A DNA stretch of 63,629 bases, counting the filler, from Olpidium bornovanus S191 (lineage: Eukaryota > Fungi > Olpidiomycota): the NCBI GenBank assembly GCA_017911155.1. It is 31 parts of 31 records of this genome, joined end to end, with 100 filler letters (N's around TTAATTAATTAA, not from the genome) between each part and the next. Parts side by side here need not be neighbours in the genome. Positions count along the whole stretch, not along the records: positions 20,467 to 24,251 come from JAEFCI010000552.1; 30 more parts are not named here. One strand, written 5' to 3'. The translations under genes were made by a program, and so were the position numbers. How positions within the stretch are numbered: the stretch's first letter is position 1; every line of letters starts with the position of its first letter. Shown piece by piece: positions 23,305 to 24,251 of this stretch. Below the pieces are notes generated by a model. That model saw only the letters and a list, made by a program, of their open reading frames with translations, had not been told where the DNA came from and made no database searches.

Positions 23305-23889
23305 GCTTGGCACAGACGGGAGGGCGCGGGAGGGAGGCAAGCTACGAGCACGCAGGACGGAAAAGCGCTCACTCCAACGAGGGCGCACGAATAACGGGAG
23401 GAGGCCGGGGCGTGGGGCCTGATGGGAAGGGGAGTTCTGGAGGGCGGGGGGCACGGGAGGGACGTGGAAGGGAGCGGGGGAGGGGGCCGAGGGGAGGGGG
23501 GGGGGGGTGGGGGGGGGGGGGGGGGGGGGGGGGGGGGGCGGGGGGGGGGAAATCGGCCGGGCGGGACCGCCTGCATTAAATCTGGTACGTTTCTTCATCC
23601 AGAAACAGAAAGAAAAAAAACGTCACCTCTTCGTGTTGGAACGCCATGTCCTCCAAAGCTTTGAATTCTCAGATCTTGGAAATTAAAATAAGGAATGCTC
23701 TCTTAGCCTTGTAAAATTATGAGGATCAAACATGTCTTCCTCACTAAGTCCAGGCTCAAACGGTAAGACCATCTGAAAGACCGTATGTGTTTGGGCTTAA
23801 ACCATGATCTCGAAAAGTGCGATATTCTTTGCATGATGGAGATGATCATAATGCAGATTGAGTCAAAAGCGTAGTTTGGAAAGGAAGCG

Positions 23890-24251
23890 ATGTATGAAGG
23901 TGGAGTTTTCGATTCCGGTGTTTACGGTCTTCGAAGTGGTCAGGTCGCATTCTGGACGAATTATGTTAATGCATGAGATACGGCTAGACTTCCCTACGGT
24001 ACGAAAATATCCGAGGAAATTGCGACGTACTCCTTAGAATGTGCACTTTTTTTTCGAGAAAAATAATGTGACATGGTTGTGGTGGCTTGCAATACCGCTG
24101 CTTCCTTCGTGCTTCCTCATGTGAAAAAGCCATGGCGCCTCGCCGTGTGTTTCGAGTGGTGAAACCGGGAGCACATATGGTTTTAGAGACTTTTGAAAGT
24201 TTTCTTGGGTCAGTTCATATCGTGGTTTCTACAACGGAAGCCATCATCCGA
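23890..24251 (+). pseudogene. murI: Degenerate bacterial-type glutamate racemase (MurI), N-terminal half, truncated by the contig end
   Basis: From ATG 23890: MYEGGVFDSGVYGLRS..NYVNA*DTARLPYGTKISEEIATYSLECALFFREK*CDMVVVACNTAAS, then after a frameshift VFRVVKPGAH..IVVSTTEA. This matches the MurI motifs GVFDSGxGG, GDTARxPYGxKS, VVACNTAS and VxPGA in order. In-frame stops at 23974 and 24064, no introns. Confidence 0.85.

Follow-up and report, generated by a model that had tools for sequence, protein, structure and literature searches.

Within the window (the whole stretch of DNA that was analysed, 63,629 nucleotides), positions 20467-24251 correspond to one contig of 3785 bases from the fungus Olpidium bornovanus (JAEFCI010000552.1), which carries the deposited protein BJ554DRAFT_7256. 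Three regions can be distinguished along this contig: the minus-strand gene for RPN1, a regulatory subunit of the 26S proteasome; a G-rich stretch that turns into a near-pure poly-G run at 23482-23556; and an AT-richer stretch at 23557-24251. The last of these contains, on the plus strand, the broken N-terminal part of a murI (glutamate racemase) gene, which has no deposited annotation and had been noticed in a sequence-only reading of this DNA.

The RPN1 gene spans positions 20467-23304, with the start codon at 23304, and its 3' part is cut by the contig end. Ten introns are confirmed by spliced RNA contigs from four runs. Nine of them are of the GT..AG type and the remaining one, located at 22630-22725 (minus strand), is GC..AG. 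When these introns are removed, the frame is open for the N-terminal 600 codons or so. One of the exons matches human PSMD2 (E 3e-30) and yeast RPN1 (E 1e-14), and RPN1 exons also match clusters of RPN1 N-terminal and PC-repeat proteins. Most of the introns contain a branch-like motif (CTGAC, CTAAC or TTAAC) 14-35 bases before the AG. An exon of an RNA contig begins at 20561 and the reading below it (20467-20560) contains stops, indicating the presence of a further RPN1 intron that is cut by the contig end. The deposited BJ554DRAFT_7256 model, of 196 residues, reads through intron 1 and later introns, in conflict with the RNA contigs, and is wrong.

The poly-G run and the continuity of the contig

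The mRNA contigs of RPN1 reach as far as 23425-23476 and stop just short of a poly-C run in the coding strand of this gene. This run (poly-G on the plus strand and poly-C on the minus strand) is a near-homopolymer of 75 bases that separates the 5' end of the RPN1 mRNA from the relic side of the contig, and right after it the GC content changes from 55% to 40-45%. The run was left out as a repeat in read placement, and no RNA-derived contigs or reads crossing 23477-23773 were seen. Rfam and repeat scans of 23300-24251 gave nothing of note. The run may be a promoter element that is naturally rich in pyrimidines, or it may mark an assembly error, and its assembled length is provisional. An origin of the poly-G as a two-colour sequencing artefact was ruled out, since the data were obtained with HiSeq2000.

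The genome was obtained from non-axenic zoospores, collected by washing cucumber roots that had grown in sand (PMC7865070). They were sequenced by HiSeq2000 with paired-end and mate-pair libraries, and a MEGAHIT metagenome assembly of 187 Mb was reduced to 29 Mb after tetramer binning (PMC7865070). The combination of a non-axenic sample and a binned metagenome assembly makes a chimeric contig or a passenger organism a real possibility. Exact look-ups of seven contig ORFs in public assemblies gave no match. Two exact DNA searches of JGI metagenomes did not give any match either and thus provided no second genomic copy. The link between RPN1 and the relic is putative, and it is carried by a single MEGAHIT metagenome contig that comes from this non-axenic culture and was binned by composition.

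Positions 23557-24251 might come from elsewhere in the Olpidium genome, or from another eukaryote of the culture, and have been joined to RPN1 through the G-rich low-complexity run. In that case, a eukaryote would still have received the relic as a transferred pseudogene, but at a site other than the neighbourhood of RPN1. A chimera of this kind would also give the observed drop in GC after the poly-G run. It accords with the assembly of a mixed sample, with the position of the near-homopolymer exactly at the change in composition, and with the fact that the run is not crossed by RNA contigs. However, the G-rich run emerges gradually from the 5' UTR and promoter of RPN1, which are themselves naturally rich in G and are covered by RNA up to 23476, no loose ends have been reported at the edges of the poly-G run, and the relic is present only in sequencing runs that hold Olpidium (see below). 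A misassembly is therefore considered unlikely, while still deserving attention.

The murI relic

As judged by translation and alignment, the plus strand from 23890 to 24251 is colinear with the N-terminal 100-120 residues (approximately) of bacterial MurI proteins. The motifs FDSGxGGL, DTARxPYG and ACNTA, the latter including the first catalytic Cys, can be recognized, and the reading is broken by two in-frame stops, one frameshift and one short deletion. The murI reading and its coordinates had been proposed from the sequence (start codon at 23890 preceded by AAGGA, stops at 23974 and 24064, Cys codon at 24088-24090), and all of them were found to be correct when the DNA was read again. The same holds for the claim that a divergent RPN1 gene is located on the same contig, there being 586 bases from its ATG (23304, minus strand) to that of the relic, and for the attribution to an early-diverging fungal host, O. 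bornovanus. In the contig, the relic is found about 410 bases 5' of the site where the RPN1 transcript starts. Its GC content, previously counted as about 45%, is 45.3% over 23890-24251 versus 54.9% over 20467-23480.

A Shine-Dalgarno-like AAGGA is situated at 23881-23885 on the plus strand, four bases 5' of the relic ATG. This match to the consensus is consistent with a bacterial 5' end that was carried along with the gene. Segment 1 of the relic (23890-23973) starts in frame 3 as M-Y-E-G-G-V-F-D-S-G-V-Y-G-L and thus combines the start codon with FDSGVYGL, which scores 6.1 bits at positions 7-16 of a local MurI profile built from the same comparison sequences described below. In this segment, a Tyr replaces the invariant Gly11, the second Gly of the GG pair in GGL. 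The shortening that had been noticed after GL corresponds in the alignment to about 4-5 absent codons. The first in-frame stop, a TGA at 23974-23976, replaces the invariant Gly32, which is the G of GDTAR.

Segment 2 (23977-24063) is the best-preserved part of the relic. It is composed of DTARLPYG, nine further residues and YSLECA, scores 32.4 bits at profile positions 36-63, and up to 20 of its 29 residues (69%) are identical to Aquificota MurI. It is followed by the second stop, a TAA at 24064-24066, which stands after ...EK where a Gly or Asn would be expected. Segment 3 (24067-24129) contains VVVACNTAAS, with the Cys codon at 24088-24090, and scores 16.3 bits at profile positions 67-92. The frameshift suspected near 24120 could be confirmed: according to the alignment, frame 3 gives way to frame 2 at an A5 run, at about 24121-24135, and two blastx segments switch frame at about 24147 or earlier. 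Segment 4 (24132-24251, frame 2) begins with RVFRVVKPGA and is cut by the contig end; it scores 3.2 bits at profile positions 89-119, and some blastp alignments of the relic extend to MurI residue 121. The MurI signal of the sequence is strong between about 23900 and about 24145; in the last 100 bases it is faint, the reading beyond about 24150 being only weakly MurI-like. The C-terminal half of bacterial MurI, which contains the second catalytic Cys (GCTHYP), would lie beyond the contig end at 24251.

The NCBIfam family TIGR00067 (glut_race) matches segments 2 and 3 separately, at profile positions 31-58 (E 0.007) and 63-88 (E 0.0007). The scores of these pieces, 15.8 and 19.1 bits, are below the curated cut-off of 146.65, and the frame is interrupted by the two stops and the frameshift. 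The relic descends from the MurI family but is not a working member of it. A Pfam search of the stop-free pieces gave no match, the pieces being too short. For both stop-free pieces, the top phmmer match among PDB proteins was the MurI of Aquifex pyrophilus, 1b73 (E 0.00017 for segment 2). This protein, which belongs to TIGR00067 and to Pfam PF01177 (Asp_Glu_race), presents the same order and spacing of N-terminal motifs as the relic.

The comparison set consisted of 82 MurI loci, obtained by a motif scan of prokaryotic genomes, and 239 listed proteins from two word searches. In two of these loci, L025 (from a Parachlamydiales bin) and L030, the first catalytic Cys is found in ACHTAS and not in ACNTAS. 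The best blastx segment of the relic reached 71.6 bits, versus 20.2 on average and 29.3 at most in 100 dinucleotide shuffles, so that the similarity to MurI is far above chance. When the relic was read through its breaks, putting an X at each of the three, it aligned with residues 4-119 of MurI (81 bits, 40-48% identity).

With respect to bacterial MurI, the relic differs not only in the stops, the frameshift and the deletion but also in residues that the family does not vary. Within the first 100 positions, 6 of the approximately 29 that are invariant among ten diverse MurI proteins are altered (G11Y, V15S, Y30N, G32stop, L58F, and S74A). The terminal branch of the relic is 2.75 changes per column, versus a tree median of 0.15. 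An enzyme cannot be encoded by this sequence.

A live fungal racemase gene, either vertically inherited or transferred, in which the apparent breaks are introns or sequencing errors, would be in line with the intact Asp/Glu racemase genes that many fungi possess (PMC5169069). However, the stops are single codons that align with conserved residues and so leave no room for an intron, invariant residues have been replaced, independent RNA contigs repeat the first stop and the frameshift stretch, and the splice evidence favours the opposite strand (both described below). A functional gene is very improbable.

RNA contigs over the relic

The relic side of the contig (23560-24251) is held by only three runs in the run index: X1 and X3, both from one study of 2025, and X2, from 2012. 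Each of them contains Olpidium RPN1 as well, at 100% identity. An origin in cucumber or in a common bacterium would predict many runs with high shares and, with only three found, neither of them is a likely source. RNA contigs cover 23774-23954 in X2 and 23797-24047 in X1, and no differences or indels were reported in these stretches. Positions 24084-24189 (approximately) in X3 and 24146-24189 (approximately) in X1 are covered too, as estimated from the depth table, and again no differences or indels were reported. Thus, the first stop recurs in an X1 contig and the frameshift stretch in an X3 contig, the second stop, at 24064, being outside the covered stretches. The claim that the gene is decayed and does not belong to a living bacterium is supported by this sharing of breaks by RNA contigs, by the restriction of the relic to runs that contain Olpidium RPN1, and by its seemingly spliced transcript.

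Position 23405, in the RPN1 5' UTR, is G in all three 2025 runs and C in the window and in the 2012 run. This difference indicates that the 2025 runs are not the data behind the contig and that their material represents another isolate or line. The ratio between the contig depths of the relic and of RPN1 is 0.058 both in X1 (6.74/115.8) and in X2 (3.3/56.7); this equality is suggestive, but it is only a hint, contig depth being a coarse measure. The RNA of the genome paper was poly(A)-selected (PMC7865070). If X2 is the 2012 library of that paper, as seems probable, the relic RNA was poly(A)-selected as well.

The X1 and X3 RNA contigs depart from the genome exactly at 24189/24190 and continue with 219 and 126 further bases, respectively, of other sequence. 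Thirty bases of the partner exon are known, and the loose-end sequence was not found elsewhere in 20467-24251. At the point of departure, the CT of the window at 24190-24191 corresponds to an AG acceptor on the minus strand, with a CTGAC about 24 bases upstream. The minus strand reads there CTGAC-N19-AG followed by the exon, which is the same layout as that of the RPN1 introns, whereas a plus-strand donor at 24189/24190 would be non-canonical. The 3' end of a putative minus-strand intron would therefore occupy 24190-24251. The low-depth RNA contigs would represent the last exon of a minus-strand transcript, the strand being deduced from the splice-site letters; this exon would probably run from 24189 to about 23774, antisense to the relic, with earlier exons off the contig.

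This junction appears to be the main argument for the location of the relic in eukaryotic nuclear DNA; it is a single junction, found in two runs from the same study. The relic is present independently in the RNA of host samples, in three runs from two studies, with apparent host-type processing at this one putative splice junction. One minus-strand frame is open for 61 codons across the putative junction and stops at a TAA located at 24036-24034. Going by its letters, this frame may be the C-terminus of an upstream gene that is antisense to the relic.

The same RNA could have a different source. A bacterium associated with Olpidium might carry the relic as a pseudogene, in a genome that is itself eroding, the sequence having been misjoined to the fungal contig; the relic RNA would then be a leaky bacterial transcript. 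Decay of murI is expected in wall-less endobacteria. The lower GC content of the relic, the retention of a Shine-Dalgarno-like run and a native start codon, and the non-axenic culture would fit this origin, and an obligate associate would recur with Olpidium in two studies as the relic does. However, the point where the RNA contigs leave the genome is a canonical AG acceptor preceded by a branch site of fungal type, and bacteria do not make such junctions. Poly(A) selection would also argue against a bacterial transcript, provided that X2 is the library of the genome paper. Moreover, no remnant of a bacterial neighbour gene was found in the 330 bases upstream of the relic, and a search of 185,579 prokaryotic species genomes gave only ordinary MurI, at 48% identity or less. 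An associated bacterium seems distinctly unlikely as the carrier of the relic. Scans for sigma-70 promoters and terminators gave results at chance level.

Possible donors and known transfers

The closest MurI proteins among those retrieved, at 40-48% identity, are of the Aquificota type, the relic having a very long branch. The best scores per phylum range from 61 to 79 bits, Aquificota being at the top and followed by Nitrospirota, Acidobacteriota, and one Chlamydiota sequence, in a comparison sample that is biased because its MurI were picked by a motif common to the relic. Two queries, a MurI alignment including the relic pieces and a Parachlamydiales MurI, were used against a set of 5.8 billion proteins; among the matches listed, none exceeded 48% identity. 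All the named relatives are bacterial, among the best 120 of 8000 hits to queries derived from bacterial MurI, most of these hits having no source name. Likewise, no clade of eukaryotic MurI above 48% identity appeared among the matches listed for bacterial MurI queries. In a tree of the relic with MurI proteins, its placement had no support. The search proposed on the basis of the sequence established homology to MurI; neither it nor the tree identified the donor, presumably a bacterium.

Two other proposals about the origin of the relic were rejected. A chlamydial endosymbiont was dropped as the donor: the 119 relatives of the Parachlamydiales MurI had a median of 59.7 bits, versus 68.9 for the set of Aquificota and Thermodesulfovibrio. 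A virus was also discarded as vector, only two viral contigs with MurI being found, both of them distant.

The explanation that we favour, and which we regard as reasonably probable, is that the relic is a horizontally acquired murI pseudogene in the nuclear DNA of O. bornovanus, overlapped by an antisense spliced transcript. A bacterial murI gene would have entered the nuclear genome as DNA, together with its own start codon and a run resembling a ribosome-binding site. Decay would have followed, with the appearance of two nonsense codons, a frameshift and a small deletion and with substitutions at several positions that do not vary in the family, so that no enzyme would be made. At present, the relic would be spacer DNA upstream of RPN1 that is transcribed at a low level, probably within the terminal exon of a spliced RNA from the opposite strand. 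Two extensions of this proposal have only a slight probability: that the fungus now uses the antisense strand of the relic as the terminal exon, perhaps a coding one, of one of its genes, or that the relic goes back to a bacterial endosymbiont once carried by this zoosporic lineage, the closest to the terrestrial fungi.

Genes of the Asp/Glu racemase family were reportedly transferred from bacteria to fungi according to Marcet-Houben and Gabaldon in 2010. In a later survey, this was the racemase family most often transferred, with 17 events, 15 of them into fungi (PMC5169069, Naranjo-Ortiz et al. 2016). The documented transfers share with the relic the superfamily, a fungal recipient and a bacterial source. 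However, they are intact and expressed genes, mostly of the Asp or hydantoin racemase types and found mostly in plant-associated Dikarya, whereas the Olpidium relic is of the MurI type, dead, unannotated and located in Olpidiomycota. Decayed transfers have been described in animals. For instance, 2,494 transferred pseudogenes are reported for termites and cockroaches (bioRxiv 10.1101/2025.03.16.643567). They are, like the Olpidium relic, prokaryote-type coding DNA that decays by stops and indels within eukaryotic DNA; in contrast to that set, about 360 bases are seen in Olpidium, for which no resident donor is known. A literature search found no mention of a racemase relic in Olpidium. Thus, the transfer of Asp/Glu racemase genes from bacteria to fungi is known, while a dead and unannotated relic of the MurI type in Olpidiomycota is probably new.

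The relic does not imply any new mechanism. A practical lesson is that contigs in which composition splits across a homopolymer need to be checked before they enter gene-transfer surveys, the Olpidium assembly being a binned metagenome. If the join is real, the genome of Olpidium, which among zoosporic fungi is the closest to land fungi, contains unannotated bacterial DNA in a state of decay, which would show that this obligate parasite of roots has acquired DNA from bacteria. Under the same condition, the relic would add a dead example to the Asp/Glu racemases, a family that fungi have acquired many times.
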